Below are positions 7,249 to 64,000 of a stretch of 64,000 nucleotides of DNA, in pieces. How positions within the stretch are numbered: the first letter of the stretch is position 1; every line of letters begins with the position of its first letter. The stretch is from positions 248,001 through 312,000 of the forward strand of contig NIVC01000305.1 in assembly GCA_002269645.1 (NCBI GenBank), read 5' to 3'. The translations under genes were made by a program, and so were the position numbers. Source of the stretch: Macrostomum lignano (taxonomy: Eukaryota). Under the pieces are notes generated by a model. The model searched no databases. It was not told the origin of the DNA and saw only the letters and a list, made by a program, of their open reading frames with translations.

Positions 7249-7311
<63 letters not shown>

Positions 7312-9443: not shown

Positions 9444-9461
9444 TGCGCAGGGCGGCCGGCA

Positions 9462-15100: not shown

Positions 15101-15933
15101 AAAACCTGTCCAGTCGGCCTTTTTCAAATTAAGGCGGTCCCGGTTCTCATGACGGGCTCCGACGGAGCTGATGCTGTACTGAATGTACGAGTGGTCGGAA
15201 AGCGATGGGAGGTCATCCCTAACCAGCCAGCTGTGGACCTGATTGAGGGCGTTGTTGGAGACGAGAGTGAGGTCGATAACCTCACGCCGATTAGAGACAA
15301 TAAATGTGGGTTTGCTGCCTCTGTTGCAAATTTGTAACGAGGAGGAGTTAATGAAATCAATTAGTAAGTCACCGCGCCTGTTAGTATCGCTACTAGACCA
15401 GGCAGTGTTGTGGGCGTTAGCATCGCAGCTAACGATAAGCTTCCGATCCTGGAGATTACAGAAGTCCGCCAGCTCCTGCAGGAGGGGGGGAGGGACGTCC
15501 TCCTGAATGTCCAGGTAAGCGGAAACGAAGGTCAAGTCAAAGACTGAGAAAGTACACATGTCTTTAGAGCAAAACATTGGCATAATAGTGGCCGGGAGGT
15601 CGTTTTTGACGAGGGCGATAGCTCTGGGGGTGTCGTTCGCGCAGAGGTACAGAACCTGATAGCCTGGCGGCAGGCAGGTCGGCTTCCCCTTGCGGGTATA
15701 CGGTTCCTGAATAAGGTAGATGTCAACTTCCTTGTTGGCAAAGGTGCCTGAAAGGTTGCTAGATGCTGCAAGGGCGTGGTGCAGGTTGATCTGAATAATG
15801 TGCAGGTTAACAGGTTGGTTCGCCGGCGGCGGATTATTTATTTGGTTGCTGGTGGCAGTGTCATCATTGGGCTGGCCGTTAAGGTTCGCCCTCAGCGCCC
15901 CGCTCCTAGTTTGGCACGGGGTTGGGAACGGCA

Positions 15934-15934
<1 letters not shown>
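12117..15934 (-). CDS. LINE ORF2: APE endonuclease, RT, RNase H and C-terminal CCHC; one frameshift near 14548
   Basis: [28 protein letters not shown] (APE); [29 protein letters not shown] (RT); FTDGS, FQAE, TDSQ (RNase H); CPFC..E..EHH..C. The frameshift lies in a C5 run. Confidence 0.9.
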
Positions 15935-17202
<1,268 letters not shown>

Positions 17203-17419
17203 TTAGCCAGCAGCCAACTACTTAGCAGCCACCTGCCCCGCAAAAAAGCAGCAGGGGGGATCCGTCCCCCACCAGCAGACCAAGACGAGGAAGCTAGCCG
17301 CTTCCACGCCAGGCCAGAACGAAAAGGAGGGGGAAGAGCCTCCTCGAAAAACGAAAAGCTGGCGGATGTCACAGAGTCCCTCGGTTTAAGTTGCCGTTTG
17401 CCCCCCATGGCCTCGGCTT

Positions 17420-18390
17420 CGTCGCCGGCGGGTGCAGCGCTGTCAGCGGCTTGCTGTCGGCTGCCGATGTTGCTGGCGGCGTAGCCTCGCCGTTGGACTC
17501 CTTCGGCTTCGTCGACGGTTCCCGTCGATTCCGGCGGGTCGGTTGCTTCCTGCTCGGTGGAGGGCTAGGGTGGCTGCTGTCGGGGACCTTCGGCGCCGTT
17601 GCGCCAGTTTTCGCGGCTGGCTGCTTACTTTGGTCCTCGTCTGCTGCCTCACGCTGGGCCTCCTCCATGCATTCGGCGTCGTCCTCGGGCCGTCTCGAGA
17701 GACCGTCGGCGTTCTGATGCTGACTTGATTTACGATGCTGGATCTCGAACTCGAATTCACTGAGGTGCTGTAGCCATCGTCCGAAGATTTCTTCTTGTTG
17801 AGTTCTTAAGATCCATGTTAATGCGGCATGGTCAGTTCGGCAGATGAACTTTTTTGCCAGCAGGTAGAATCGGAAGTGTCGCATCCCGTCCACAACTGCC
17901 AAGAGTTCTTGCTTTGTAATAGGATACCGGGCTTCGGCCGGTTTGAGTCGCCGGGAGAAATAGCCAATTGGTCGCTCAACTCCGTCAGCTTGGCGTTGGC
18001 TCAGGCAGGCTCCGATTCTGGTCGCAGAAGCATCCGTGTCCAGGATAAACATAACATTAGGATCCTCGCTGAACTGCGGATACGCGAGCACAGATGTCGA
18101 AGTCAAGGCTGCTTTAAGCTGATCGAACGCGTCTTGCTGGGCTTTTCCCCATAGACAATTGAAATTTCGGATCTTCTTCTCCTTGATCAGATCGTGGAGC
18201 GGAGCAGCAAGTTCTGCAAAGCCAGGTACGAATTTTGAATAATAAGCGCACGTGCAGACAAAACTTTTAAGTTGTCGCGCTGTTTTTGGTCTTGGCCAGG
18301 TCTGAATAGCCTCGATCTTCGCCGGATCAGTTTTGATTCCATCTTTTGTTACAACATGGCCCAGGTAGTTTAAGCTTGCCCGAAATAAAT
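17420..18390 (-). pseudogene. Gypsy RT C-terminus and RNase H, element B
   Basis: YLGHVV..GI..DP.KIEAI..WPRP, LDTDAS, IGYFSR, YPITKQELLA, TDHAAL, NADGLSR. Continues left of the LINE at 11536-12013 as the pre-integrase linker. Confidence 0.9.
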
Positions 18391-19977
18391 TCCGGTGTAA
18401 AATTCGATGTCGAATCTGGATCGAATCGAACAAGAAATGGCACTCAGAAATTTTCTTAATTAGACGATCGAATATTCTGTCTAATTTCGACCAGTAAATT
18501 TTATTCAATACTCATACTCATATTTATGTATTACTCATAGTAGTAGTGATAGTAAGTAATAAAGCAAAAACTTTTTAATGGGAATCAGTATAGTGTTATT
18601 AGCAGAGCTCGCAGGCAATATATTTGTATTGTATTGTATTTGCTACATTTGAATCCTGTACAGTGTGTACACACGTTGAAACGGGTAAGTAAACATCGGG
18701 TTTGTTTTGTTAAAAAAACTTAATTAACTGTCAAGGTCGTAGTACATTTATAAATGAAGTGAACTTCAGTTGCGCTTTACACCTAATCAGATAACGAAGG
18801 AAAACTGAAATAATAACAATGTATCCTCAGTGTGGAAAGTAATAACACAACAAATCAAGTCACGGTTTATGTAACAGTATATCTACAATATTTTACAGTA
18901 TTTATTGAGCAGCGTACTACAGAAAATAATGATACTTGTACATTGTAATTACACTCAGCAACATTAAAAAGGCGCCATAACAGAAGATTCCGTCTGTGAT
19001 CACCACTTTTGAGAGTGCAGGTAAAGTCTCTCGCTCTTTACGAGTGACGCAACTCAGCTACGCCGCAGCAGACTTAAGTTAAGAAATGAAGTGGGGGGAG
19101 CGGTGTGCGAGGGTTGGACGGATTAAAGGTTAAAGCTACCCCAATCAGTTAACTGCTAGTGAGCTAGCAGTAGAGTGGCGACTTCTCGATATTTCTGAGA
19201 ATATATAAAATTAATAGTACACTGTAAATTTACACTGTATAGTACACTGTAAAATTACACTTTACAGTCCTAATAACTACATTGTACTATTATAATTACT
19301 TCTGTAAAGTGTAATTTTACTGAATTACACAAATATAAAAATTGAAAATTGTCCGATGATTAAAGTGTACTACAAAAGAAGCATGATGGAATAAAAATGA
19401 TCTAATCCTGATCCATAAATGTAGGTGTACTGTCTAGGCAGGCTGCTACGGAAGATCGCTTTCGCTGGGATTTCCGAATCCCAGTCCGGACAGGAGCGTC
19501 GGACAAGTAGTTTGCTATCCGCTGCTCAATGTCCATGGCCGGATACTGTCCATCTGGTATGATGGCTTCTGGTATAAAGAAAAATATATATATGCAGGAC
19601 TTTTCAGGGGCCGATCAGGGACTACTCAATTCTCGGGACGGGAAACGGCCAAATCATGCAGAAAAAAGATGGAGGCCGATTTTCTCTGTTCTCTGCTGAT
19701 TTTATGTTTTATCGCAAGAGCTTCAGCTTTTCACTATGTACACAAAATTTATCCCTCTTCAAGTTCCTGTAGCCTGTTTCTACTCAAATAATTTCGGATA
19801 AATGCTAGGAGACATTTTATACAGTACCCCTTTAATACACAAACTTTAATGCAAAACGCACATGAACCAGAACAAACAAAGTAAGCATAACAAAGTATCC
19901 CAATAGTAGTAAGCAAATATAAGCAATGCGACAAATCGAATTCGTAATCCAGTAGTCTCAGTCGGTATCAATCGCGC

Positions 19978-22250: not shown

Positions 22251-22252
22251 GT

Positions 22253-22852
22253 GGAATATAATTTGGATATGAAGTCAAGTGGCAGGCGAATGACACAATG
22301 GCGACGTGACGTGAGCAGTGGCTATGAGCACAGTGAAGGCAGTGAAACGTAGTGGCGAGTTGGCGTCGGTCGTGGCGTGAAACAGTCAAGTAAGTGTGTG
22401 AGCAGGCTGGCCCAGACAGAAGGGCCGTGGCGAGAAATAAGGAGGCTCGAGGCAGCCAGACAAACAGATAAGACAGCTAAGAGGCCGCAGGGAAGGAAAC
22501 AAGGAACAAGCGGAGAGAGAGGAGAGGGAGGAGAGAGGAGTGCCCGCCGCCAGGCGGGGGGTTTAATAAAAGAGCGCAGAGGGGGGTAGCGCGAAGCACG
22601 AGTGATTTCATTGGCTGGCGAGAGAACTTAAAATTATCGATCGTGCCAATTTTATACGGTTGCGAGAGAGGATAGCAAAATATACAATGAATTATAAATT
22701 GCGACAAAATCGTTGGGCACTACTACAAGTAAACGTCGCAATAAACGAATGGAAAAGTTTAGTTGAAACGGTGAAACTGAAGGGTTGAATGACTATGGAG
22801 AACAGCAGTCCAACGGCCCTTTTCGGGACCACCTTAAACTGACAACGTCACA
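22253..22852 (-). repeat. 3' LTR of element A (distal ~230 bp missing)
   Basis: Matches 31806-32404 almost base for base. Minus-strand PPT ggaagggaggcggg immediately precedes TGTGACG at 22853-22866. Confidence 0.9.
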
Positions 22853-23329
22853 CCCGCCTCCCTTCCGAAAAAGGATAGGGTCGCGCAAAAAGAAAACCAA
22901 CACGCGGGGTGACGGCAAGAAAAACACAACGTGACCGCAGTTTATGAAATTATAGCAGAGTGAATTACAGTGGGGCTGAGTCAGTTTGTATGAGCATATG
23001 ATTACCGGACAAAATTACAAAGTTCCAAAGGCTACAGACTATTACGAGAGCAGAACATTACAGGGCAGTAGAACACGGTGAGCACGAGCAATACAACATG
23101 GTGGTGTTACAAAAACATTACAAAATACAACAATGGTTACGGAAAGTAGTGCACGACGGAGCGCGCGGCGCGCGCGAACACAAAAACGACAAAGGACGCG
23201 CAGAAGTGATACGATGGATGAGGCAAACACAGAACAAGGATGACAAGGTGGATGAGGCAAAGGATGCAGAGCAGAGGCACGGAACAGAGGCACAGTCCGG
23301 ACAACTGCGGGCAAACGACGACAAGCGTC

Positions 23330-23910
23330 AAGGGCGGCGGGACACGGCGCGGCGCGCCAAACAGGCGGGAGGGGGAAACCGGCGAGGGAGCGCCCAAGGC
23401 GGAGACAGGACGGCGCGGAGCGCCAAGGCAGAAAACGGCGCAGCGCGCCAGGCGGAGAAAGGCGCAGCGCGCCAAGGCAGGAGACGGCGCAACGCGCCAG
23501 GCGGAGAACGGCGCAAGAGCGCCAAGGCAGGAGACGGCGCAACGCGCCAGGCGGAGAACGGCGCAAGAGCGCCAAGGCAGGAGACGGCGCAGCGCGCCAA
23601 GCAAAGGAACGGCGCCACGCGCCAAGGCAGGAAACGGCGACAGGGCGCCACGGCAGGGAACGGCGCCACGCGCCAAGGCAGAGAACGGCGCCACGCGCCA
23701 AGGCAGGAAACGGCGACAGGGCGCCACGGCAGGGAACGGCGCCACGCGCCAAACAGAGAACGGCGCCACACGCCAGGCAGAGGATGGCGCCACGCGCCAG
23801 AGGCAGAGGATGGCGCTACGCGCCAAGGCAGAGGATGGCGCTACGCGCCAAAGGCAGAGGACGGCGCAGCGCGCCAGGCGGAGGACGGCGCTACGCGCCA
23901 AAGGCAGAGA
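23330..23910. repeat. GC-rich degenerate tandem repeat (~25-30-bp units) in the 3' region of element A
   Basis: Repeated ggcgcagcgcgccaaggcag(a/g) motifs, followed by (GT)n at ~23927-23944. Confidence 0.85.
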
Positions 23911-25051
23911 GAGCGTGCGTGCGGTGCGGTGTGTGTGTGTGTGTAGTGCTTACTTTACCCCACAAATATTATCTATTAGCCTTATTATGAAATTTGCGAA
24001 ATATGAATAAAATCTGCAAATAATTTTTGACGAAGGTGACGCTGCTGCACTCGTCAATGGGCTGAGCAGCGAACTAAGCTTGCTATATTCCTATATACAT
24101 TTTTTCGAGTTTTCAATGGTTGCTTTTTCAGTTTTTATTTTCCTTTTTGAGTTATTTATGCGTTTCACTAGTCGCCAGTAGTTATGCTTTAATTACTAAC
24201 CGTATATTGCACATTATATGGTTTCGGGGTATTACTATTAGCGTCAGAGATGACGCACTTATTCATTTCATCGACTTTGGTAATACCGAACGGATGCTAT
24301 AGGATTATTCTAAGCTATTAATTATTTTAATTATTTTTGCCATTGCTATAATGTTTATACGTGCCCTAGTGTATTTTATCGATTATGGCAACGCCGATGC
24401 AGGCAGAGGACGTCTACAGAATATTTTGACAACTATTATATTTATAATATTCATCTCGTAATCATTTTTCGACCAATATATGCATTATTTTATGCCATAT
24501 TTATGCATTAATTTTTTAGTTTACTTTTGAATATTTGAGCTAAGGCTAATGTCTTATCTACTATTTGTTTCTAGCGCCGTAGTGTATTCTATAGACTACG
24601 GCAACGCCGACCAGGTGCAGTCGGAGTTGGGTGCTGCGATATTATATATATTCTTGCGTTAGAACAATATAGTATTTATACTGTCGGCATATTATGCTAA
24701 TTCTGCTAGTGTTTTATTTTTATTTTTTTTATTTTAGTTAGCTATATAAATTATCAAATTGCAATGTCGCTGCAGTTTATCCCCTTGGCTACGGTGGTTG
24801 GTTGTTGGCTGGTACAGCTGTGGAAGCTGTGCACACTAGTATCTGGCAGTGAGTAACAGCTGTGGCTTGTGTTTTGTGGCTTGCGGCTGGCAGATGCCGC
24901 AGGGACCTGTGACCAACAGGTGCCACAGGAGGTAGTTTAACGCCTTGCCCGGGGCGTGAGCTTGCGGTCTACAGGTGCCGCAGAGACCTGTGGCTGACAG
25001 GTGCCACAGGAGGTAGTTTTACGCCTTGCCCGGGGCGTGAAAAACTGGCGG

Positions 25052-28000
25052 TTAGTGTCTGCTTCCCCACTGCTGGAGCAGGTCGGACACTTGACAGGTC
25101 CGGTACCTGACAGGCGGGCGGATGGGGCGTCCGTACCTGGATCTGGGTACGTCAGCCGGGGCTGGTGGCTCAGCTGCTTGCGCAGCGACTGGATTCGCAG
25201 CAATCTCAGGTGGTTCTATTTGCTCGGAGGAAGGGTCCCCCAAGGAAGCCGTGTACAGCGACTCTGAGCTGTCTTGGCTGTGGCTGGTGTCAGTGTCTGT
25301 GCTGTCAGTGTCAGTGTCTGGTTGTGGCTGTCCCTCAATAGCTACAGCATCGCCAGCTTCGGCGAATGGTTGGCCTTCTCCCGCTTCAGCTCCCGCCCCC
25401 TCCTCAAAGGCGCCTGAAGCTGGCGGTGGTGGATTTGGCCCTGGCGCTCTGCGTGGGCTCTCTGGCCGGGCAGAGGAAGGCTGGGGAATGGTGACGAGGC
25501 TAAGCTCGCTCGCGGGTCCGCTGGGCGGGTTCACACTAGGCGCTGGAGACCTGGCATGGGTGGCCTCACCATACCGGTCAACTACGTCTTGGTAAGTGGG
25601 CTGTCTGATGCACGGTTTGAGGCGGTCAATGTTGTAAATGTTATGGCGCGGATTTGGCACCCGATCTGCTGGGTTTAGGAGACCATACTCGGGGACTAAA
25701 CGGTAAGTCCGCTCGGAGCAGCGCTGCACTACTCGGTATGGCCCCAACCACACAGCGGGTTCTATGCCCTTGTGGTTCGGGTTCAAGACCCAGACTAACT
25801 CTCCCTCGTGGAACTCAGCGCGGAGGGCGCGGCGGTCGTAATACCTTTTCTGCCTCTCCTGGGCTTTACCCCTAGTGCGGCGGGCTAGGGCAGAGGTTTC
25901 GACTAGCGTGCGGTGCAACTGGTGGGCGTACCTCTCCGGCTGGTAGTGTTCATTTGGCGGTGGATTGTGACAGAGGTCGAGCGGTAGTTCGAACTCACGC
26001 CCGAAGAAAAGTTTGGCTGGAGTAAATCCGGTGGATTCGGCGACTGTGGCACGGATTGACAGGGCGGCCAGGCGGCTGGCAAGGGGCCAGTCGCATTGTC
26101 TCTCAAGACAGATGGCTCTAATCTGGGCTTTCACCGTCTGGATCATCCTCTCAGCTTTACCGTTAGCCTGAGGGCGACGGGCTGTGATCCGACCCATGTC
26201 AATCTGTAGGAGCCTAGTTAATTCTATCATGGTACTATTGATGAAGGCAGTTCCGTTATCAGACACCAACTGCTCCATCACCCCATACCTGGCAACCCAT
26301 TCAGTCAGGATGGTTGTGGCAGTGGTCTCTGCGCTGACGTCGGGAACAGGAACTACTTCGACAAACCCGGTGAACCGGTCAATCATAACCAGCAGGTACT
26401 TGTACCCCTCACACTCTTCGAATGGGCCTGCGTGGTCCACGTGGACAACCTGGTTCGGGTAGCCGGACAGTTCTGGTTGCATAGGGGCCTTGAGCTTACG
26501 CTTTGACTTCTTAGTCTTAGCGCAAACGGTGCATTCGGCCAGGACCCCCTTGACTATAGTATCTAAGTCGGAAATAACGAAGCGCGCCTTCAGGGCGGCC
26601 ATCGTCTTGGTGATACCGCAATGGTTCAACTGGCCATGATACTGAAGGACCAGATGACCGACGTCTGCGGTCTCAGGCACCACCAGGCGCCTGTTGGCAG
26701 TCTTGGCTTTGGAGGATTTGGCTAAGTACAATAGACCCTCGACTACTTCAAGGTCATTGAATTGAGCCCAGAGTGAGCGCATTTCCCGGCTACAACCCTG
26801 CAGTTCGGCCTTGGACAATGGCTCAGTCTTACACTGGACACTGGCGATTAGGCGCGCCATGTCAACACAGGAGTCCTGGGCATTCTGGGCCCAGATGAGC
26901 TCAGGTGGCACTTGGGATTCGGTTTCAGGTTGACGGGATTCAGTCTCTGGGCTAGGAACAGCACCGCTAGCAGTAGCGCGGACATTCGGCGTTGGTTCAG
27001 CCGGGGCATCTGTGTCAGTCTGACACGCTACGCTAATGCCTATGGTCTGGACGCACACCTGTCGCAGTTCTCTAGAGGGGGGCGTACGCCGGTGCTTTGG
27101 GTCTTGGTCCAGGAATTTCCCCTTAAATTCTGGAATCTGGCTGCACGTCGGGCAGTCAAAGTGATCGGCTCTGAATTTTGGCAGTTTACTAAGAGCGTCA
27201 GCAGGCACGTGGTCAACGCCTGGACGGTACTGGACTGTGAAATCGTATTCGGCTATTCGTTCTAGAGTGGACTGCTGGACCTTCAGCGGGTACAGTTCAA
27301 TGGTGGCAAGCCATTGGGCCAGCATACCAGTGGCATGCTTCTTAGAATGCAGCCATTTGAGCGCGGCCGCGTCCACCCGGACAGTGAAAGGCTTGTCTAA
27401 TAGATAAGGACGGAAATGCTCGAGCATCAGAACGAGCCCTAGCAACTCCCTCATGGTGGCGCAGTAGTTTCTCTGGCTACTGTTGAATTTTTTGGATGCG
27501 TAAGCTATAACTTGCTCTTGGCCATCTGGCCCGAGCTGGTACAGCACACCCCCAGTGCCGTCAAGCGAGCTATCGCAGTCCAAAATAAATTCGCGCCCTT
27601 TGGCAGAGAGGTCTGGATACGCCAGAATCGGTGGTGAACAGAGGCTATGTTTGAGTTCTTGGAAAGCCCGTTCATGATGCGGTTGCCATAGAAACGGAGC
27701 ATCCTTTTTGGCTAAGGCATACAAAGGCGTGGCGATGATTGAGAATCGCGGCACGAATTTCCGGTAATAATTCGCAAATCCCAAGAATGATAGAAGCTGT
27801 TTCTTAGAAAGCGGTTTAGGCCAGTCTTGGACAGCCTGAGTCTTCGCTGGGTCAGCCTCAATGCCCCGGCTAGACACAACGAACCCCAGGAATGCGACCT
27901 TGTCCTTAAACAGCTCACACTTAGACGGCTTAATTTTGAGACCGGCTTTTCTAAGCTGCCAGAGGACCAGCGCGAGATGCGCGATCATTTGGTCATTGTT

Positions 28001-30817
28001 GACAGCCTTAATGATAATGTCGTCTAAATAGATGAGGCTGACCTTCATCAGGAGAGGTCTAAACACTTTGTGCATCAGTTTCGCGAAATTGGCAGGTGCC
28101 GTCTTGATCCCGAATGGTACTACCTTCCAGCGGAAGGTGCCTTGGGGGCAGGCAAAGGCGGTGTAATCTCTAGCCTCCTCTTTGATCCCTACCTGCCAGT
28201 ACGCGGAGGTCAGGTCAAGGCTAGAGAATACAGTGGCCCCGGCAAGGCTGTCAAAAGATTCTTCTATGAGTGGCAGAGGGAAGCTACACGGCTTGATGAG
28301 CTTATTGACGGCCCTATAGTCTATACACAAGCGTTGAGTGCCGTCCTTCTTCTTGACTAGAACGATAGGTGACACCCAGTCGGAGTCGCATTCCTCGATG
28401 ACCCCTTGCTCGAGCATCTGCGCTATGTTCTGGTCTAGGAATTCCTTTTGGGCTGGCGTAGTGCGCCTGTATGGTTGCGCAACAGGCTTGGCCTTGGGAT
28501 CTATTAACTCTATGCCCATCTCGTGTAATGTGGTATGGCCTAAATCTGCGTTTGATCGAGAGATTTGGCTATTGAAGTAGTTGAGCAGTTTCAATACGGT
28601 GGCGAGTTGGCCCCTAGACAATTTGGCTTGGTCTAGTTGGAACTGCGTTGTCAGCCATTTGGCTAACTCCCTACTAGGCGGCGACAGCTTACTGAGTTGG
28701 CTGGTGAGGTTAGCTACATTGTCCAGGCTAAAGTCAGACTCCTTCAGGGTCGTCTGAGCTATGACCTCATGGCTATCTAATTCCTGGAATGAGGCAATTT
28801 CTTGCCCCCTAGTTATCTGAATAGGCTGCTCCCCACTGTTGAGCCCGCGCACTAGTATGTGGTTAGTATCGCTAACTGAGTCTAGAGTCTTAGCTACCAA
28901 CTGTTCGGTCTCTGGTCCGAGGATCCGGGACATGACTATACCGGAGGTGTACGGCGAAGAGTCGAGGACACGACTGGGAATCAGGGTTTCCGAGTGCGGG
29001 GGCAATTCTACGGTGCCGGCGGCCATCACTCTTCGGAGTTGGAAAATTCCCTTGTCCCCCTCAATGACTGGTACTGACACCCCTGCTACTAAAGCTCGGC
29101 CAGAGTTGAAGTCTAGCAGCATCTCGAAGCTGCGCAGGAAATCCATGCCTAACAGGGCTTCCGTGGTACAGTAAGCAGTGACTAAGAATACATGCTGTTT
29201 AGTCGTATTACCTAAGTTGATTTCGCAGCGTAACGATCCTAGAATGTCTACCTGAGAGCCGCCGAAGGCGGTGGCACGCTGCTTATTGGCACTAGGCGTG
29301 AATATGTTATTGACGGGGTCAGCTGCAACCAGTTTGGCCTTCACGTCAGCACCCATGATGCTGGCATTGGCGCCTGAGTCTAGACAGGCCAGAACTTTAG
29401 AGTCTCCTACTCCTAGCTGCACGAAATAGCTAGACTCAAAGGTGTCAGCTGTGTACCCCCCTTGTCGGCATTGTGGATCACTGTCCCCTGGCTGAGGTTG
29501 CACATTACAGGCCTTGTCGTGCTGGCGCCCGGGGTCGACCTGGCGCTGGAATTTCACCCTAGTCCCCCTAAGGCGGTGCTGCTCGACTAGGCTACGCAGG
29601 CTGGGAGACAGTTGGCTAATGTGAACGAACAATTTCTCTGGCAGGTGCTCAGATTGGATGAACCCGTAATTCTGAGACCATGTGGCAATGGTTCCTAGTT
29701 CAGTCGTGACTTTTCCACGGCTGGGCTGCTGATTTTGGCTCCCCCGGGGCTGCTTTGGCGACTGTGGCCTCGGCGAGGGCGATGGACAGTCAGCGATCAG
29801 GTGATCGGTCTGGCCGCATCGATGGCAAGCCCGCGGAGGGCGAGGAGCTGGCCTAGGTTGTCTATAGGTTTGGCTAACTTGTGGTGGGCCCCCAGTGGGC
29901 TCTGTGCGAGCGGGCCCCTGATTGGTAGTGACAGGCGGAGTGGTCTGGCTTAATCTATTGGCTTGGTCGGTCACCATCTTCTCAAGCTCAGCGACCCTCT
30001 GTTCTAACGCTTTCTTCTCAGCGTCAGGTTCTATGGCACGAACCTTGGCTATAGTAGAAGGCACGTTCAGAAGCTGGCGGACCCCGACAAGATCTTTGGC
30101 CTTCTGCATCAGCTCTTCTGCAGAGGTGGCACTGTCGGTTTCCTGATCCCATAAGAGGAGCTTTTCGGCGAGGTCCTTATCCCTCAGCCCATGGCAGAAT
30201 CTGGCCTTGAGTAGGGGCTTCGCTTCAGCGAGCGAGAGACCCGCTAGTCTAGAATAGGAGACCAGTCTGTCGAAGAAATCAGACATCTGCTCATTATGAG
30301 ATTGGGCGGCAGCAACTAATTCTACGTAGGCCTTGTCCTACTTCTTGGCATCGGTATACCTTTCCCTGAGCAGCCGAAGCGCAGATTCGAAAGGCAACTG
30401 GTCACACCGGTAATTAAGATATACCTCTTGGCATTCGGCTGACAGCAAAGATACGAGAATGGCGGACTTCTGGTCCTCGGGAACGCGGCAAGTGGCTAGA
30501 TACGAAGTAAGCTGAGCTTCCCACGTATCAAAGTTCATCTTCGGCTGATAAGCGATTGGAGGGCGAAGGCGTATGTCTGGCTTCGCAGGCGGCGAGGAAT
30601 TTGGCGCTGACGGCGAGGAAACGGCGAGACGCTCTTCGAGCATCCGGTGAAGAGAGGCTAAGGTTTGAGTCAACAAGAGTTGCTCACTAGGAGCTGGCGC
30701 GGCGGCAGCAGCTGCACCTGCTGGCTGCTCACCGGCATCGACTGCGTCCTGATCTGGCACGACGGCATCTCCGTCAGCCAATGACGCTGCAGCGTGGTTG
30801 TCCCCGTTGTCGGACAT
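25052..30817 (-). CDS. Gypsy Gag-Pol: capsid, CCHC, CSD-like, protease, RT, RNase H, integrase; in-frame TAG at 30338-30340
   Basis: CHRCGQTDHLIADC; LDSGA; WVSPIVLVKKKDG.QRLCIDYR; YLDDII; LDCDSS; HVDHAGPF; VSDNGTAF; ANGKAER. ORFs 30338..30817 and 25052..30286 are in the same frame, 17 codons apart. Confidence 0.95.
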
Positions 30818-31551
30818 TGTGCAAGATTGAGTGAGACGAATGAACCAAGCGTGAACGAAAATAAGGCTCCAGAGAAAACGAATTGAGGTTGATGACGCGA
30901 GAGAGATGAGAGAGATTGCGTCCTACTAACAAAAATACGTGCCTGACAGGGGCAAACCACAAAAAGCCTAGTATAGGGGAGAGTCCTATCACGCAAACCA
31001 CCCGGACTAACTGTCAGGCAATAGTCCCTACAAACAATCAGCGCACAGCGTAACCTGGCGTGGCTTGGCACACGCAGCGGAGCTATCTTGGCAGAGCGTA
31101 AGCTCGAGCTCAACGCAGTTGACAGCGACGACCAGCGACGACTCGCGGCGACGAGCGAAGACCGGCCGGGCAGTCAGGACCCCTGGGCCTGACGTGGCAC
31201 AGGCTCTCGCAGCCTTGCGGACCGAACCTCAGGCGTGGCACAGGCTCTCGCAGCCTTGCGGACCGAACCTCAGGCGTAGCACAGGCAGGCAGGTGCTCAG
31301 TCACGAGCCGGCAGAGCTGAGCAGAAGTCTCGCTGGTGGCTGGTCCTTGGTTGCAGACTGGCAGGACTGAGACGAAGTCTTGATGGCGCTGATTACGAGC
31401 TGGCAGGGCTGAGCAGAAGTCTTGATGGCACTGACTTAGTTGTGAGCCGGCAGTGCTGAGTAGGCGTCTCGGTGGTGCTTAGTTTCGAACGTGTTGATGT
31501 TGAGCAGAATCTCAGTGGCGCTTAGTTGCGAACCGGCAGTGCTGAGCTTGG

Positions 31552-31568
31552 TCTCGGTGGGACCTCCA
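31552..31568 (-). other. Primer-binding site for tRNA-Gln
   Basis: The + strand tctcggtgggacctcca equals the 3' end of metazoan tRNA-Gln(UUG) including CCA. It lies 6 nt from the 5' LTR. Confidence 0.85.
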
Positions 31569-31574
31569 AAATTA

Positions 31575-32404
31575 TGTCACGTTATTGGCGTAGCGGCCAG
31601 CTATGCGGTGACCCTTAAAAGGGCCGTTTTAGTCCCAAAATAAGTTGAAGTCAATTCTTGTAAAGCGGATTTTGTAGCGGAGCACTTGGCGATAAAGGCA
31701 GGAACTGCCGTAGTTGTCTTTATTGTTAATATCAGTATTAAGTTTGGTTGTTACTGGCAATAAACAGACTATAGCTTTCTGGGCACTGGCGGCTGCAACA
31801 ATGGGTTGAATATAATTTGGATATGAAGTCAAGTGGCAGGCGAATGACACAATGGCGACGTGACGTGAGCAGTGGCTATGAGCACAGTGAAGGCAGTGAA
31901 ACGTAGTGGCGAGTTGGCGTCGGTCGTGGCGTGAAACAGTCAAGTAAGTGTGTGAGCAGGCTGGCCCAGACAGAAGGGCCGTGGCGAGAAATAAGGAGGC
32001 TCGAGGCAGCCAGACAAACAGATAAGACAGCTAAGAGGCCGCAGGGAAGGAAACAAGGAACAAGCGGAGAGAGAGGAGAGGGAGGAGAGAGGAGTGCCCG
32101 CCGCCAGGCGGGGGTTTAATAAAAGAGCGCAGAGGGGGTAGCGCGAAGCACGAGTGATTTCATTGGCTGGCGAGAGAACTTAAAATTATCGATCGTGCCA
32201 ATTTTATACGGTTGCGAGAGAGGATAGCAAAATATACAATGAATTATAAATTGCGACAAAATCGTTGGGCACTACTACAAGTAAACGTCGCAATAAACGA
32301 ATGGAAAAGTTTAGTTGAAACGGTGAAACTGAAGGGTTGAATGACTATGGAGAACAGCAGTCCAACGGCCCTTTTCGGGACCACCTTAAACTGACAACGT
32401 CACA
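31575..32404 (-). repeat. 5' LTR of element A (830 bp)
   Basis: TG...CA ends; minus-strand TATTAAA near 32120 and AATAAA near 31715. Confidence 0.9.
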
Positions 32405-41145: not shown

Positions 41146-41408
41146 GTGGCGCCTAACTAAACTAGTGACTCACTACAATAAATAAATCCAATTTTAAATA
41201 GCACAAAACAATTTTTAGTTTTTTTTTTCATTTTTAATTTACTTCTATTTTGTCTATTCTAACAAACAGTGTTTAATTATTCAATTTTAATTTAGCTTAT
41301 AGATATTAAGTTTTATTTAAAAAACATAAATATAATAATTAAATGTAGTAATTTTACAAAAATACCTAAATGTGATATATTTCAATTTTTTATCGAAGTG
41401 GATTCCAT

Positions 41409-42678
41409 GGGCCTTTTCATATTACCAATTCCAGAACCAGAATCGGTTCGGAATTCCAAGAAAAACAGCAGTATAATGAGGTGGGGGTGGAGAAGTTTTA
41501 ACAAGGTTGAAATTTGGAGGTCGGCCGGTAATTCTTCAAAACCGGTAGCGTTGCGTTCGCACGAATAAAACCGGAAAATCGCGCAGACGAATCACAACGA
41601 AATTCTTCTCCTTTACTCCGACTGCCGGGTTCTCAAGTCCGGGGGGAGGGTAGTTGTAATCGTAGCGGAGCGGTCGTAGAGCGGCACGGTCGTTCAGTTG
41701 TAGAAAACACTGGGGTAGATTTGACACCGTAAAGTAATGTGTCGATTTGCAGAGCTGATTACTGTCAGTAGGGTAGTTGCTGCCACCACCGTAATTTACG
41801 TATTACGGAACGTTTAGTGATCTCAGAGCTTTCTTTGAGATGAGATTTCGGTTATTTTACGCCCCACGGGCAAAGGATTCAAGATAGGCTATGGCTTAAG
41901 TCAACGGAATAAATATTAAGCGTTAATTTGTTGTTATTTATTAAAGTAATTTGGTTATTATAATTTTAAAGCAGGTTGTTTATGGATTAATGAGTATTAT
42001 AATGACGATGATGAATACACGGGCGCCGGTGCGCTAATAAACTAATAAATTAATGAACCGTAGAGATAAACAGACAAGATAGTGAGGGAGCGATCGCGCA
42101 AGAAGAAAAGGGGGAATTAAAAAATTGGCAACTGAGCATGAGTAGTTTATATAAGCAAAAGTAGGGCAACGTCCAAAGCATGGGGGAAAGATTAGCCAAC
42201 AAGGGGGCCATACAATGGTTAAAGGAGTAATCACACAGAAAATATATAATGAACCGCTTAATTCCAACTAATGAAAAGGCTGTTAGCCAACGATGGGAAA
42301 CTGATTAGCAACGGTGGGTCCACACACGGGGCCAACAGGAGGAGGGGGGTGATGTCATATAACAATGGTTGGACTCACGGGTTGGTATTCACGAAGAAAA
42401 AGAATACGGGCGCGCATTCAAAATGGAAAAAATTATTAAAATAAAATTATTAAATGGTGGCAACCCCACTGCCACAGTAACTATTAAACTCTGTTAATAT
42501 TTGACTGCCTTAACAACCTAACTTAGCACAATTTTTCACTTTCTTCTTGGCGATTGTCATTCAATAATAAAAACTTTATAGCACGTATCTCCCTCTAGTT
42601 ATGGAGACAAAAAGTTATAGGCCTACTTCACGAATTGGTTCTGGTTCTGGAACCAGAGCAAGCAATATGAAAAGGCCC
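41409..42678. mobile_element. PIF/Harbinger-like MITE hosting LTR copy C5
   Basis: TIR gggccttttcatatt / aatatgaaaaggccc plus subterminal ccagaaccagaa; 3-bp TSD cat/cat. Confidence 0.6.
41477..42476. mobile_element. LTR-like copy C5 (1000 bp, uninterrupted)
   Basis: TGAGGTGGGGG...GTGGCAaccccacTGCCACA; flanks ataa/gtaa (one mismatch); minus-strand TATATAA near 42150 and AATAAA near 41938. Confidence 0.75.
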
Positions 42679-44059
42679 CATTTTGAATCAATATACACTT
42701 ATTTCTCATGAATTCCTTGTGAAATCCACATCAACATTAGGACAGTAGAAAAAAAATAATGCATAAAACTTTGCATACTATTATGTAATCTTATTTCAGA
42801 TTGAAATTATAGTCATTTATTTGTAGTCATTTATTTGAATTTACATTTAAATTCCACATGGCCACATAAAATCCACATAGAATCCATGAATCATTTTTCA
42901 CTGGGTCTGTGTTAAGTAGAAGTGTCTGTCAGCAGATGTCAAGCTGGACCCCCAAAATACACTATGGAGATAGAAACAGTTTGCAGGTGAATAAATTGTA
43001 CAGGCTTCAAGGTAGGGTGCTGATTTTTTACTTGCCAACGCATCATGCGTGTGTCAAGATGAAAACAAAGTTTTATAGGTCTGTATATGTTTTAAGATGT
43101 TCTGCTGAGTTGCATAATAATACACTATGGAGATAGGAACATAGGCCTCTATTTTATATGTGAATTACTTGTACAGGATGTTTTTAAATGCTGAGATATT
43201 TTACGTAGTTCTTATTCTTTTTGCATCAAAGTTTTTGTAAATTTTTATAGCGTTTCATCCAAGTAAAAAAAATTATAGTGGCTTTGTTTTAAAATTTGAA
43301 TGTAAATCTTAATGTCTATTGGGAAATAAATACAACATATTGGTGAGTCCCTTATTTTGCTATATAAAATTTTGAAATTTTTTTGCAGTATATGGAAGTG
43401 ACCCTAGCCTAATGAAATTGGGTTCCAGTCGTTTCGTCTGCTGACAGTTCGTCTGCTGACAGTTCGTCTGCTGAGCAGACGAAAAGTTTTCTCTTTTTAA
43501 AACTGTTCGTCTGCCGGGAAATGGGGGTGGAGGATACGGAGTGGGGTGGGGAGCTGCCCAACCCCACCCTGGGGTTAGGGTGGGGCTGGTCTCTTCAAAA
43601 TGAATCTCTTCATAAAATGTCATCCGTGCAAATTGACCTACTGGGAACTTTTTTTTCAAATTTTCCAATTTTCTGAAAAATTTTTAAACGCATGCCCTAG
43701 AAGCGGCGGCTGCAGGTCAAAAGGGCAACAGATCAAAAAGGCAACAGTCAAAAGGGCAACAGATCAAAAAGGTGACAGTCAAAAGGGCAACAGTCACAAA
43801 TACTTGTTAGAACAAGCTGTTGAAAGTTGAAACTATTTTGAACCCGGGGGACTCCATTCCCGGAATTATTTTTGCATGTATTCTGAAATCTGAGATCAAA
43901 TTCAAACAAAAACTTGTTAATAATTAGGATAAAGTTAAACATAAAAAATAGAGTATACATTCGTGTAAAATTAGGATTTGAAGCAAGCATTGAAATTGTT
44001 GGCTGCATGGGGTGCTGCGCAAACTCTGGCCTCTATCTCTGCCTTTCCCTATGTCCCTT

Positions 44060-48744: not shown

Positions 48745-49997
48745 TTCGGTTGGGGAGAAAGTTCCCGCTGTTTCTAGAACTTTCTGTCAAACTGAGTTTT
48801 TTTAAACAAAAAGCCAATTAAGAAATAAAATAATCACCATCACAATCGATCACCTTCTGCCATTTTTCGGGCAGACTCATAATACCGTCACTGTAAAATT
48901 TCTCTGGCTTTGAAGTGAAAAAGTTGTTCAGCCAGTTATCGAGCTCTTCATCATCAGCGAAGGTTTTGTTGTTCAAGGCGTTGGCCAGAGACAAAAACAG
49001 GTGATAGTCGCTTGGTGCCAAGTCTGGTGAATACGGTGGATGGGGCACCAATTCCCAGCCAAGGTCCAGTAGCTTTTGGCGAGTCACCCTAGCAGTGTGT
49101 GGACGAGCGTTATCATGGAGGAATCATACCGGGCCATGGTTCGGACGCTTCTGTGCGATGGCGGCGGCCAATCGGTCCAGCTGTTGGCAGTATAGGTCGG
49201 CCGTAATCGATGTGTTGGGTGGCAGCAGTTCGTAGTAGATGACGCCCTTGCAGTCCCACCACACGCATAGCATGACCTTGCGTGGGTGGAGTCCGGCCTT
49301 TGGCTGCAGCTCAGGCGTCGCATCAGCATCAACCCATAATCGTCGACGTTTGATGTTGACGTACAGGCACCACTTTTCATCGCCCGTAACGATGGACTTC
49401 AGCCAGTTGTGCGTGCGCCTGTAGGAGAGGAGAGAAGTGGCCACCTCTGCCCTGCGCTCCTTGTCCCAATCTGACAATTGGTGGGGTACCCATTGTGCCA
49501 GCTTGTACACCTTGCCCAGCTGATGCAAATGACTGGTGACCGTTTTATGGTCTACATCAAGGACTTGCGCTAACTCACGCGTGGTTTGCCGAGGGTCAGC
49601 CTCTACGAGTGTGCGCAGCTGGTCGTCATCAACCTCGGAGGGACGACCTGACCGGGGCAAATCTTCGAGGTTAAAATTTCCCTGGCGAAACCGCGCAAAC
49701 CAGTCCTGGGCAGTGCGTTCAAACACGGTACCCGCACCAAATGCAGCGTTGATGCGACGGCTGGATTCTGCGGCTGACAGTCCAGATTTGAAGTCGTAGA
49801 GCAGGAGACCACGAATATAGGCCCGAGAGAGATCCATAATGCTGGTGACTAGTGAGTAATCTCTTTGGTTTAAATAGCATGTTAGAATCACACACACCCA
49901 CCCTCAATATATACCCACACAGCCGGGCTCTGGAATGTTCCAGAAAGTTCTTAGACAGAAAGTTCTAGAAACCGCGGGAACTTTCTCCCCAACCGAA
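48745..49997 (-). mobile_element. Mariner transposon
   Basis: TIR ttcggttggggagaaagttcccg... at both ends, TA TSD, 1253 bp. Confidence 0.95.
48818..49837 (-). pseudogene. Mariner D,D34D transposase with one in-frame TGA
   Basis: WVPH.L, IVTGDEKW, GPV*FLHDNARPH, PYSPDLAPSDYHLF. The only lesion seen is the stop at 49124-49126. Confidence 0.92.
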
Positions 49998-52380: not shown

Positions 52381-52519
52381 GGACTCAATCGAAATTTTCT
52401 CTGTCAAAAAGAACTTAACTCTTAGTTCATTGGTTAGGGTTAGGGTTAGAGCTGCCCAGAGCTGCGTGTTGAATTAATTGAATCAATTAATTGCGCAAAC
52501 CATTTCTCAGTCAGACAGT

Positions 52520-53714
52520 ATCAGTCTTATTTAAAGTTAAATAAACGGTTGCGCAATCTAAATCAACCCTCCAATACGCAGCGGCAGACCCCCTTCCAAT
52601 ACGCCCAACTTTATCTATTACGTCTCGCAAAACTGAGTACAATTTTTGCAGAAAGTTAAAAGTATGGAAATAGTTTTTTAAATGCTGTGCTTTTTCTTTT
52701 CATATTTAAAGCATACAACTTATATCCCCGAACTCAGCGTTGCAAGATCTTTCCAGCAATATAAGTCTCTCCTCTCAAAGTTTAAAACTCGAGGAACAGT
52801 TAGCGTTTGAAATTTACCGATTTCCCGACTGCTTGCTAGAGAAGCTCGCAAGTTTATTCATTGAATTTCACTGCCAAACTAATACACAGGGCTGCCAATA
52901 ATAAAACCAAATGAATCTATCAGTCTTATTTAAAGTTAAATAAACGGTTGCGCAATCTAAATCAACCCTCCAATACGCAGCGGCAGACCCCCTTCCAATA
53001 CGCCCAACTTTATCTATTACGTCTCGCAAAACTGAGTACAATTTTTGCAGAAAGTTAAAAGTATGGAAATAGTTTTTTAAATGCTGTGCTTTTTCTTTTC
53101 ATATTTAAAGCATACAACTTATATCCCCGAACTCAGCGTTGCAAGATCTTTCCAGCAATATAAGTCTCTCCTCTCAAAGTTTAAAACTCGAGGAACAGTT
53201 AGCGTTTGAAATTTACCGATTTCCCGACTGTTTGCTAGAGAAGCTCGCAAGTTTATTCATTGAATTTCACTGCCAAACTAATACACAGGGCTGCCAATAA
53301 TAAAACCAAATGAATCTATCAGTCTTATTTAAAGTAAATAAACGGTTGCGCAATCTAAATCAACCCTCCAATACGCAGCGGCAGACCCCCTTCCAATACG
53401 CCCAACTTTATCTATTACGTCTCGCAAAACTGAGTACAATTTTTGCAGAAAGTTAAAAGTATGGAAATAGTTTTTTAAATGCTGTGCTTTTTCTTTTCAT
53501 ATTTAAAGCATACAACTTATATCCCGAACTCAGCGTTGCAAGATCTTTCCAGCAATATAAGTCTCTCCTCTCAAAGTTTAAAACTCGAGGAACAGTTAGC
53601 GTTTGAAATTTACCGATTTCCCGACTGTTTGCTAGAGAAGCTCGCAAGTTTATTCATTGAATTTCACTGCCAAACTAATACACAGGGCTGCCAATAATAA
53701 AACCAAATGAATCT
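52520..53714. repeat. Three tandem copies of a ~399-bp unit
   Basis: tcagtcttatttaaag begins at 52521, 52920 and 53319; near-identical. Confidence 0.92.
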
Positions 53715-59318: not shown

Positions 59319-59356
59319 CTTAATTGGTTTTTATGTTCATGTTTAACACCTTCCCA

Positions 59357-59667
59357 GCCTCCCAAATTCTCAGCTGCTGGGCCAGCCGCCCAGACCCTCA
59401 GTTTCAGTTGCTGGGCCACCAGCATCTCAGATCCTCAGTTGCTGGGCCAGTCTCTCAGATCCTCAGTTACTGAGCCAGCTTCCCAGATCCTCAGTTGCTG
59501 AGCCAGCTTCCCAGATCCTCAGTTGCTGAGCCAGCTTCCCAGATCCTCAGTTGCTGAGCCAGCTTCCCAGATCCTCAGTTGCTGGGCCAGCCCCCCAGAT
59601 CCTCAGTTGCTGGGCCAGCCTCCCAGATCCTCAGTTGCTGGGCCAGCCTCCCAGATCCTCAGTTGCT
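59357..59667. repeat. 28-bp minisatellite cctcccagatcctcagttgctgggccag
   Basis: About 10 tandem copies just 3' of the F-box gene stop. Confidence 0.9.
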
Positions 59668-60307
59668 CAGCCATGCCTTTAGGTTCAGAGTCAAACTACA
59701 TAGTTACTAGGCTTTCTTTTTCGCAAATATTTGTTGCTACCAGCTGTATGTGTTTTGTTATGTTTCATAATCAACTATACCAAAAAAAAGTTCGCTTGAC
59801 AAAAACTGAAACTTTTGATTCTTGTTGCATATATTGTGCAGTTGGTTGAGATAGCAAATCATGTGGATATGCTCTCAGCTACATGTTAAAGTTTCAACCC
59901 GGAAACCAGTGGTCAACTTTTCTCAAATCTGAAATTTGTCGACCATCTGGTTTTGGGGTAGAAAATTGAACATTTCGCTGATGTAACTTAATTGCATTTC
60001 AATTTAGATTGTTAAGGCTGCACTTACTAACCTGGCATGCGCCCAACTCTTGTACTTTAATTACTGTGATGGCTATTTTTTTAATAAAGCAACTATTCCT
60101 TAAAAATTGAAAAGAATTTGGCATTTCAAACAAGTTGCTGATTCCGGAATCATTTTTGACATTGTAAGTTTTTAAAGAGTGTTTTTAAATGCTAGGTTTT
60201 CGTTCAAACCTATACCGCACTTGTTTATAAAACTGCCTTGCGGTAAAACCGTTTAATTATTTTATTTGTTTGTTTCAGCCAGCCAGACACAGGGCGACTG
60301 CGTCTCA

Positions 60308-61282
60308 ATGATCTCTTCAATTGTTTCAAGTGCTCGCTTGGCAGGACCTCTGACCCAGAGACTCGGTTGGGTGTCTCTTCTTCCGACGTTAACGAAAACT
60401 TCCTCTTTAATTTTGCGTCACTCGTGTCGCTATGCTCAACCAGTAGCTTTGTCGTCAACCCGATCGGTTCAAGTCAGTCCGAGTGTCAGGTTCTTCTCTT
60501 CGAAATCTTCGACTCCAACGCATTCGTCTTCGTCTGATAGCGATAGCGACTCCGATAGCGACTCTTCTTCGTCAGATTCGGATAGCGAATCGGAGGAGGC
60601 TGGTTCGAATCCCGGCCCAACGCACAAGTCCGTGTCGGGATCGTCCACTAAGACTGGACTTAAAGGGGGTCTTGATGGTGGTGGCATTTTTGCCGCTGCT
60701 GCCGCTGGTGTGGCCGCGAAAGCAACAAAAGGATTGACAGAAAGTTCTTCGATTGGTTCAAAGCAGCCAGATTCCGGAAGTCCTTCCGGTTCCAAGCCGT
60801 CTTCCCCAGAAAGTCAGTCTAATTCGAAGCCATTAACCGGAAGTCCACCAGCTTTGAAACTACCAACTACCGGAAGTCCACCAGCTTCGCAACCACCAAC
60901 TACCGGAAGTTCCGCAAGTCCACCAGCTTCAAAACCACCAACTACCGGAAGTTCCGCAAGTCCACCAGCTTCGCAACCACCAACTACCGGAAGTTCCGCA
61001 AGTCCACCAGCTTCAAAACCACCAACAACCGGAAGTACCGGAAGTGCATCGGGTTCAAATACGTCAGCAAGCGGCAGTCTACTCGCTACTTCAGGCGCCT
61101 TATCGGACTCAAGTCGTATCTATTTGGGCAAATTTTCGGCCAGCATTGATTCAGTGGACAAGTCTCTTGACTACAAGAACACTGAGTACTTTGTGTTTGA
61201 CGACTTGTCTTTCTACGACTACGAGATGATGATGGAAACTAAGCGTCTGCCTCAGCCTAAGAGCAAGCTCACCGATTACTGA
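60308..61282 (+). CDS. NDUFV3: NADH dehydrogenase flavoprotein 3-like (long form)
   Basis: Arg/Ser-rich transit-peptide-like N-terminus ending RFFSS, Ser/Pro/Thr-rich middle, C-terminal LDYKNTEYF.FDDLSFYDYEMMMETKRLPQP resembling the NDUFV3 ..YKN..H..Y...TF.D....M..FRLPQP motif. Confidence 0.65.
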   Translation: MISSIVSSARLAGPLTQRLGWVSLLPTLTKTSSLILRHSCRYAQPVALSSTRSVQVSPSVRFFSSKSSTPTHSSSSDSDSDSDSDSSSSDSDSESEEAGSNPGPTHKSVSGSSTKTGLKGGLDGGGIFAAAAAGVAAKATKGLTESSSIGSKQPDSGSPSGSKPSSPESQSNSKPLTGSPPALKLPTTGSPPASQPPTTGSSASPPASKPPTTGSSASPPASQPPTTGSSASPPASKPPTTGSTGSASGSNTSASGSLLATSGALSDSSRIYLGKFSASIDSVDKSLDYKNTEYFVFDDLSFYDYEMMMETKRLPQPKSKLTDY

Positions 61283-61814
61283 CTCATCAAACGTTTTGCC
61301 GCACTCTGTCGACTTATCAATCGTTAGAATCTCTTCAGAATACGAGTAGCTCTGAACTATAATTTTATTTGTATTTTCGATTGACAACCGGAGTTGTCAA
61401 GGACAGTTCTTCGTCCTTGCCACTGTTTTCGGGTTTTGAGCCGTGCCATCACATTCTATATTTTTGTAAGAAATGTGTTCCGAGTCCTGATATAGCCTTT
61501 GGTTTGAATTTACTGAGTTACGGATAAGTATAATTTTATAGCCTTTATTTCTCTCAAAGATCATTTTCAACTGTCGTTCATTCTTAACAGCCAGTTTTAA
61601 AAATACGAGTATAAACTTCTAAATTCTTTGTTACTTAAAAATTTCAACGCACTTTGTTTTGTACCCACTATACTATTTAATAAAAATTAAGTATGTAAAT
61701 TCCTTTTTATTCATAGTAGCTTATTAATATTATCAATATAATTGACAGATTTTAAATTTCTTTACAACTTTTTTCACGATTAGTGTATTTGCGATACTTT
61801 GTAAAAATACATGA

Positions 61815-62812
61815 GGATTAGCGGTGCTCAATCATTAAGGTGCCTGGGATTGGCGGTGCTCAATCATTAAGGTGCCTGGGATTGGCGGTGCGCAATCATT
61901 AAGGTGCCTGGGATTGGCGGTGCGCAATCATTAAGGTGCCTGGGATTGGCGGTGCGCAATCATTAAGGTGCCTGGGATTGGCGGTGCGCAATCATTAAGG
62001 TGCCTGGGATTGGCGGTGCTCAATCATTAAGGTGCCTGGGATTAGCGGTGCTCAATCATAAGTTCCCTGGGATTAGCGGTGCTCAATCATAAGTTCCCTG
62101 GGATTAGCGGTGCTCCATCATAAATGTGTCTGAGATTAGCGGTGATCCATCATTAAGGTACCTGGGATTAGCGATGCTTGATCATTAAGGTACCTGGGAA
62201 TAGCGGTGCTCCATCATTTAAAGGTACCTGGGATTAGCGGTGCTCCAGCATTAAGGTATCTGGGATTAGCAGTGCTTTTATCATTAAGGTACCTGGGATT
62301 AGCAGTGCTTTTATCATTAAGGTACCTGGGATTAGCAGTGCTTGATCATTAAGGTACCTGGGATTAGCAGTGCTCGATCATTAAGGTACCTGGGATTAGC
62401 AGTGCTTTTATCATTAAGGTACCTGGGATTAGCAGTGCTTTTATCATTAAGGTACCTGGGATTAGCAGTGCTTGATCATTAAGGTACCTGGGATTAGCAG
62501 TGCTTTTATCATTAAGGTACCTGGGATTAGCAGTGCTTGATCATTAAGGTACCTGGGATTAGCAGTGCTTGATCATTAAGGTACCTGGGATTAGCAGTGC
62601 TTTTATCATTAAGGTACCTGGGATTAGCAGTGCTTGATCATTAAGGTACCTGGGATTAGCGGTGCTCAATCATTTTAAGGTACCTGGGATTAGTGGTGCT
62701 CCATCATTTAAGGGTACCTGGGATTAGCGGTGCTCCATCATTTAAAGGTACCTGGGAATAGCGGTGCTCCATCATTTAAAGGTACCTGGGATTAGCGGTG
62801 CTTGATCATTAA
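61815..62812. repeat. ~32-bp minisatellite, ~31 units
   Basis: Unit ggtacctgggattagcagtgcttgatcattaa with variants; no unique spacers. Confidence 0.95.
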
Positions 62813-63685: not shown

Positions 63686-64000
63686 CCCCAGATCATCAGT
63701 TGCTGGGCTGTCAGCCTCCCAGATCCTCAGTTGCTGGGCCAGCCTCCCAGATCCTCAGTTGCTGGGCCAGCCTCCCAGATCCTCAGTTGCTGGGCTGCCA
63801 GCCTCCCAGATCCTCAGTTGCTGGGCTGCCAGCCTCCCAGATCCTCAGTTGCTGGGCTGCCAGCCTCCCAGATCCTCAGTTGCTGGGCTGCCAGCCTCCC
63901 AGATCCTCAGTTGCTGGGCTGCCAGCCTCCCCGATCCTCAGTTGCTGGGCCACAGCCTCCCAGATCCTCAGTTACTGGGCCAGCCTCCCAGATCCTCAGT
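63686..64000. repeat. 28-32-bp minisatellite, same family as 59357-59667
   Basis: gcctcccagatcctcagttgctggg(ctg)cca tandem running off the window end. Confidence 0.9.

Follow-up and report, generated by a model that had tools for sequence, protein, structure and literature searches.

Repeats sharing a conserved core in Macrostomum lignano are LTRs of a Ty3/gypsy-type family group, with the core probably in U5

Diverged repeats that share a conserved core in a 64-kb stretch of the Macrostomum lignano genome (hereafter the window, meaning the whole stretch of DNA analysed) are the LTRs of one Ty3/gypsy-type (Ty3/Mdg4) family group of this flatworm. Past selection kept the core while the U3 was free to change, and a low mutation rate is not the cause of its conservation. 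Only this family group has the core; the LTR of a sister family is without it. Judging from where it lies in the LTR, the reason for its retention is most likely a U5/leader role in the replication cycle; we assign a probability of roughly 0.7 to the combined reading that the repeats are Ty3/gypsy LTRs and that the core is the body of a U5 kept for the usual work of U5 and leader. In this way, a repeat arrangement that stands out in the genome of a model flatworm is traced to ordinary LTR biology, and the analysis yields the anatomy of the family: its LTR ends, target duplication, putative primer-binding site, orientation, autonomous partner, and the part of the LTR that was under selection.

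Searches by blastn (query, positions 41441 to 42300), by self-comparison, and with an nhmmer profile located the core exactly five times in the window, each time on the + strand and where a sequence-only reading of this DNA had placed it (C1 to C5, Table 1). Identity to the C5 core is 85 to 87% in C2 to C4 and 71% in C1, with E-values from 1e-34 to 1e-129; some of the figures that compare C2 with other copies were computed with a foreign insertion nested in C2 skipped. As had been noticed, the copies align poorly elsewhere: only C2 and C5 can be aligned outside the core (69% over 379 nt), and the other tails show no significant similarity. The short hairpin motifs and their loop variants are likewise present as described. 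TTACT-nnn-AGTAG (loops aac, ttc, ttc, ctc, and gtc) and GCC(C/T)-nnn-GGGC (loops cgt, cac, cac, ctc, and cac) are found in every window copy, CCGTAAT-n6/7-ATTACGG and GGTAG(T)-t-GCTGCC both recur, and GTCTCA...TGAGAC becomes ATCTCA...TGAGAT in C5. All of these motifs also occur in copy C6, on another contig, and local hairpins were seen in nine of nine copies of the comparison set, which was drawn from four contigs. Indels of 1 to 2 nt are visible in the core alignments, so the region is non-coding, as had been proposed. Seven loci around unrelated gypsy genes, together about 150 kb, contained one additional core copy. A protein search for further copies with the stop-free minus-frame translation of the core returned nothing, and exact-pattern scans with an invariant 31-nt core motif gave no match in metagenome, prokaryote-genome, or viral collections.

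Table 1. Features of the LTR family group in the window (window positions; an empty cell means no entry)
Feature	Position	Strand	Core copy	Basis or remark
C0, U3-side fragment of another LTR copy, without core, truncated at the window edge; opens the head-to-tail array	1-240	-		attatgacg... region common to other tails; window edge and array by direct reading
C1, subfamily B LTR	241-1660	-	338-669	Tail motifs common to C6, C7, and C8
C2, complete subfamily A LTR	1661-3846	-	1760-2157	
C3, subfamily A LTR without U3-terminal hairpin	6597-7645	-	6690-7044	
C4, 3' LTR of element E4	7646-9443	-	7715-8064	Adjoins the E4 internal region
C5, solo LTR, 1000 bp, TG...CA ends, within MITE	41477-42476	-	41545-41897	
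C5 conserved core	41545-41895	-		Sense strand: 69-419 nt from the LTR U5 end
U3-terminal hairpin GTGGCA-n-TGCCAC, then A	42457-42476 (C5); 3827-3846 (C2); 9424-9443 (C4)	-		
E4, internal region of a 5'-truncated Ty3/gypsy-type element	9444-18511	-		Pfam RT_RNaseH, Integrase_H2C2, rve; blastx
E4 pol remnant, broken	10444-18511	-		5' part missing, one foreign insertion

To the right of C4, on the minus strand, the window encodes an IN and, past a nested non-LTR element, a gypsy-type RT/RNase H, with Pfam matches to RT_RNaseH, RT_RNaseH_2, Integrase_H2C2, and rve in the strand order RT, RNase H, IN. This element, E4, has a 3' region and what is left of pol (part of RT, RNase H, and IN), in which a minimum of two frameshifts and two in-frame stops break up the IN-coding part. 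With the E4 integrase as query, an exhaustive protein search recovered M. lignano relatives at 79 to 88% identity, the best of them on contig NIVC01000504.1 (locus L009). At this locus, direct repeats at 6575-7453 and 15497-16376, 94% identical and in the same orientation, each contain the core and flank gag, PR, RT, RNase H, and IN on the opposite strand; pol is interrupted by one inverted segment, and the element is of the same family as E4 (84 to 89% nucleotide identity). Both repeats have TG...CA ends, the pair is surrounded by a perfect 4-bp duplication (ATAA), and a TGG-type 18-20-mer, TGGTGTCAGCTAAGTGGGAT, starts one base past the core-side end of the gag-proximal LTR as a putative primer-binding site. 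Together, the LTR pair, its target duplication, and the primer-binding site demonstrate that the unit is an LTR whose sense strand is the minus strand of the window. They also ruled out monomers derived from a LINE untranslated region, as well as a 1-kb satellite, and on the same findings we dropped a SINE or non-LTR 3' tail and a Helitron-like rolling-circle unit. The copies had been called LTR-like from their letters, and they are true LTRs; a guess at minus-strand transcription agrees with the gag-pol of both L009 and E4 being encoded opposite the core + strand and with a sense-strand AATAAA. The sequence-only reading had also reported that no autonomous partner was identified. Because the paired L009 copy flanks gag-pol, that "missing" partner has been found, and a truncated copy of it lies beside C4. 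Exact look-ups of three window ORFs gave no match, and a candidate homology of 9444-10650 to the LTR unit was rejected (only 12-mers match; E = 1.6).

The LTRs measure 0.9 to 1.4 kb. Each copy starts on the + strand with TGAGGTGGGG; the U3-terminal hairpin and its trailing A close C2, C4, and C5 some 1 kb further on. The + strand unit runs TGAGG...CCACA, giving TG...CA termini, in C2, C4, C5, C7, and C8. Comparison with an empty copy of the surrounding MITE (L001 24076-24335) shows that precisely this unit was inserted and reveals the 4-bp target duplication of C5, at 41473-41476 (ATAA) and 42477-42480 (GTAA). In C1, the U5 end is intact and the U3 end is without about 14 nt of its terminal hairpin; an apparent TATG duplication around this copy was dropped, the hairpin at 1372-1392 being internal in that subfamily. 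On the sense strand, AATAAA lies 405 to 501 nt from the U5 end in C1, C2, C3, C5, and C6, at the upstream edge of the core, a position that fits a U5 of about 420 to 450 nt when the R/U5 border is inferred from motifs. The core also adjoins the putative primer-binding site, and both neighbours bear out its earlier placement in U5. Of the parts of a full element that had been named alongside that placement, the LTR pair, a TGG-type primer-binding site, and gag-pol are present and the purine-rich tract is missing. Ahead of the 3' LTR, neither L009 nor the window has a polypurine tract; its place is taken by a C/G-rich run (window 9444-9461; L009 7454-7480), and on the sense strand the run at the C4/E4 junction resembles that before the L009 3' LTR. 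The missing tract is a departure from the rule for LTR retrotransposons. The sister family at locus L010 (44 to 49% protein identity) has TGGTGGCAGCGGTGGGAT at the matching place after its own unrelated LTR, from which the core is absent.

On the U3 side, the tip hairpin differs between subfamilies on both arms, taking the form GTGGCA..TGCCAC or, in the L009 LTRs (7433-7453 and 16354-16374), GTGGTAG..CTACCAC; an isolated 66-nt fragment at L001 8219-8283 bears the latter form. A CRE-like palindrome, TGACGTCA, located at 284-291 in C1 and also in LTR tails of L001 and L009, is kept in the U3 of the subfamily B copies C1, C6, C7, and C8.

The case for selection rests on a comparison at two depths. 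Between lineages, the core is 71 to 87% identical, and the tails are 69% identical or cannot be aligned. Between the two LTRs of the L009 insertion, in contrast, identity is 94.0% in the core and 95.3% in the tail, and the substitutions that separate the pair are very strongly biased (39 of 43 are transitions). Because core and tail have decayed equally since insertion, the core is not a mutational cold spot; the difference between core and U3 arose in active lineages and therefore points to a cis-acting function under purifying selection. The earlier reading had staked its case on a core better conserved than its flanks, and that is what we found between lineages and not within one insertion.

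Read on the sense strand, the LTR begins with TGTGG and a short hairpin in U3. The remainder of U3 is rich in pyrimidines, changes fast, and contains microsatellites; next come an AT-rich stretch that holds AATAAA and a U5 estimated at about 420 to 450 nt, which ends in ...CCCCCACCTCA, one base ahead of the TGG-type primer-binding site. In the window, C5 is a solo LTR, C4 the 3' LTR of a decayed element, and C0 to C3 are LTR copies stacked head to tail beside C4. For the function we propose, by analogy with the U5 regions of retroviruses and LTR elements, that the U5 may serve in tRNA primer placement, the start of DNA synthesis, first-strand transfer, RNA packaging or dimerisation, and the binding of integrase at the U5 tip. 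The core would act through its sequence and a few short local hairpins and not through one large fold. One result sits apart from this proposal: the alignment gives its stronger folding signal on the complement of the genomic RNA, which a pure leader-RNA reading does not predict.

As an explanation of the conservation, a folded structure is weak. Folding of the single C5 sequence against dinucleotide shuffles gave z = -1.28 for the + strand as RNA, z = -0.12 and -0.31 for the - strand as RNA, and z = +0.35 for the + strand as DNA. For six copies, the RNAalifold energies were -62.7 kcal/mol (+ strand) and about -42 (- strand), with unfavourable covariation terms (+1.2 and +2.0); with nine copies, the + strand gave -45.2 with a covariation term of -1.4. 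When the alignment was folded against column shuffles, which ignore dinucleotide content and are known to inflate z-scores, the six-copy alignment reached z = -2.74 on the + strand, a score that 1 of 200 shuffles matched, and the nine-copy alignment -2.97 (1 of 150), versus -0.09 and -1.65 on the - strand. Four pairs are changed on both sides in the nine copies, compared with 1.9 +/- 1.0 in shuffles, and 30 of 500 shuffles reach at least four. Double changes that keep the pair come to one or two. CCGTAAT/ATTACGG turns into CCGTAAA/TTTACGG in C6 to C8, which counts as one event. The other is the ATCTCA/TGAGAT change in C5, which had been read as a compensatory pair; the change is real but the pairing is ambiguous, since TCTCA in C5 has two possible TGAGA partners downstream, of which the C5 minimum-free-energy fold takes the inner one. 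Paired columns vary in 28% of cases, versus a mean of 36% (minimum, 24%) in column-shuffled alignments; a test of stem against loop variability built on such columns was dropped, the excess of invariant stem columns being mostly an artefact of RNAalifold prediction. A few local hairpins are plausible, with the 7-bp CCGTAAT/ATTACGG stem best supported, and none of a large fold, a ribozyme, and a folded strong-stop DNA is supported.

These numbers bear directly on an alternative in which the core is kept for a strand-specific fold and the + strand is the one selected, as minus-strand strong-stop DNA or an antisense LTR transcript. The alternative would account for the stronger alignment signal on that strand, for one-sided stem changes that are mostly G-U compatible there, and for the two pair-keeping double changes, of which the one in C5 is ambiguous. 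The single-sequence values (+0.35 as DNA, -1.28 as RNA) speak against it, however, as do the non-significant count of both-side changes and the inflation of the column-shuffle scores. Furthermore, the helices were picked on the + strand, which biases the count of wobbles, and neutral substitutions are nearly all transitions, so wobble-compatible changes are expected without selection. We consider this explanation unlikely. The same data bear on several claims of the sequence-only reading. That its chain of hairpins rises above chance is not confirmed, and its folded minus-strand strong-stop cDNA finds no support in the + strand folded as DNA. The wobbles that it took to fit the + strand mostly do fit it but are explicable by the transition bias, and alignment folding on both strands, which it had put forward as a check, leaves a + strand score near -3 with nothing comparable on the - strand and covariation terms that are weak or unfavourable.

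Downstream leader enhancers occur in insect LTR elements, and the core might instead be kept as double-stranded DNA, its palindromes being dimer sites for transcription factors that bind downstream of the start site and drive or tune LTR transcription. The half-sites are invariant, the 3- to 7-nt spacers vary in sequence and hardly in length, and excess folding energy is absent, all of which would suit such sites. However, the CCGTAAT and ATTACGG arms change together in C6 to C8, which is unexpected for a protein site. LTRs of M. lignano are known to carry functional factor sites in the form of heat-shock elements (PMC12801592). The present LTRs differ in this respect: no canonical heat-shock element was found in any copy, nor was a known motif identified in the core. 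On balance, a role as protein-binding DNA seems improbable.

A further possibility is that the core is under no constraint and that the U3 has merely been replaced fast, through microsatellite slippage, indels, and recombination between lineages. The tails are indeed purine-rich on the + strand, with (GA)n and other simple repeats, and most of them are unalignable rather than of low identity. Replacement of this kind would nonetheless leave unexplained the one tail that can be aligned: counting substitutions alone, C2 and C5 agree at 69% in the tail versus 87% in the core. The equal decay of core and tail after the L009 insertion also places the origin of the difference in active lineages. We hold this account to be quite unlikely.

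Similarly doubtful is a stronger version of the structural idea, in which the long U5 is a modular, strand-specific structured element that acts as the first cDNA product or as an antisense LTR transcript, kept by selection in this family group and lacking in its sister family. The presence in the core of a self-cleaving ribozyme, or of some other RNA family already described, after the manner of retrozymes and Penelope-like elements and as had been entertained for this DNA, is close to refuted: only the tandem arrangement and the hairpins speak for it, the units are LTRs of a gag-pol element, and Rfam 15 gave no match at the gathering score across the whole window or at E <= 10 for all copies on both strands.

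The U5/leader reading can also be set beside known systems. Leaders of retroviruses and LTR elements include the TAR, poly(A), and PBS hairpins of HIV-1 and the primer-binding regions of Ty1 and Ty3. Like a retroviral R-U5 and leader, the core lies between a polyadenylation signal and a putative primer-binding site, is the best-kept part of the LTR, and forms a chain of short hairpins; unlike a retroviral R-U5, the U5 described here is, at about 420 to 450 nt, several times the usual length, and its fold is without statistical support. Retrozymes and Penelope-like elements share with the present repeats a tandem arrangement and a conserved non-coding block, but those bearing hammerheads differ from them in that here there is no ribozyme match, and true LTRs surround gag-pol with an integrase-type target duplication. 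Cassandra TRIMs, plant LTRs with a block derived from 5S RNA, likewise combine a conserved block with variable LTRs; in contrast to that block, the core matches no cellular RNA family, and the element is autonomous and not miniature.

The closest comparison is with the host itself, in which 137 families of Ty3/Mdg4 (gypsy) elements have been catalogued (Ustyantsev et al. 2025, PMC12801592). The present elements share with these the host, the RT-RNase H-IN order, TG...CA ends, a 4-bp duplication, and a tRNA-type primer-binding site. By this comparison, which was made on features and not on sequences, they add one more family to a known kind of LTR retrotransposon, and its conserved U5 is long. 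Specialists in transposons may note three oddities, namely, a U5 several-fold longer than usual, a 3' LTR without a purine-rich tract, and a head-to-tail stack of LTRs; none of the three touches a long-standing question.

The stack consists of C0 to C4, which follow one another in one orientation across window positions 1 to 9443 once nested insertions are set aside. Within it, the U5 ends are intact and the U3 ends are mostly shortened. At one junction, the sense strand reads from the U5 end through a single T into an intact U3 start; elsewhere the neighbour's U3 start is shortened. This arrangement points to unequal recombination, or to LTRs having repeatedly inserted near the U3 end of one already in place.

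Several of the insertions are themselves recognisable elements. C2 is split by a fragment of a non-LTR element (2282-3399) that is 5' truncated, ends in a (GTT)n tail, and is flanked by a 9-bp duplication, TGATACGCT; in C4 the interruption is a small inverted-repeat element, nested at about 8061-8915. A foldback-like element at 3850-6596, with inverted ends of about 390 bp (94% identical) around an array of 167-bp tandem repeats, sits exactly at the LTR-LTR junction of C2 and C3. The non-LTR element nested in E4 (12027-17406) encodes endonuclease, RT, and RNase H and is unrelated to the fragment in C2. The MITE that C5 splits in the window (41405-41476 and 42477-42685) is about 260 bp long, with inverted ends beginning GGGCCTTTTCATATT. 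It is intact at L001 24076-24335 and L009 16561-16814, and the L001 copy is nested inside the LTR copy C6.

The window as a whole is a nest of transposable elements. A long open frame at 25052-30286 encodes a polyprotein 99% identical to M. lignano BOX15_Mlig033625g1, and the contig of that protein, NIVC01001280.1 of assembly GCA_002269645.1, was found to contain the window. The minus strand at 22251-32404 carries a young Ty3/gypsy element. Its two 602-bp LTRs agree at 99.5%, and it has a single open frame, of 1744 aa, in which a zinc knuckle and a cold-shock domain (PF00313) stand ahead of PR-RT-RNase H-IN. The PF00313 match is just above the Pfam cut-off and is also flagged in M. lignano relatives of this element. 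Among public gene models, A0A1I8GNL1 (3732 aa), named for a GPCR family 3 domain, includes parts that translate the LTR core and the pol of the element, and the model is probably chimeric. Window positions 49124-49897, 52519-53714, 59354-59678, 63687-64000, and 61802-62812 hold several tandem-repeat arrays and the remnant of a mariner-type transposase. The arrays in the right part of the window have 400-bp units at 99% identity and units of about 60 bp and about 30 to 95 bp, and they lie near an NDUFV3-like exon at 60266-61282.
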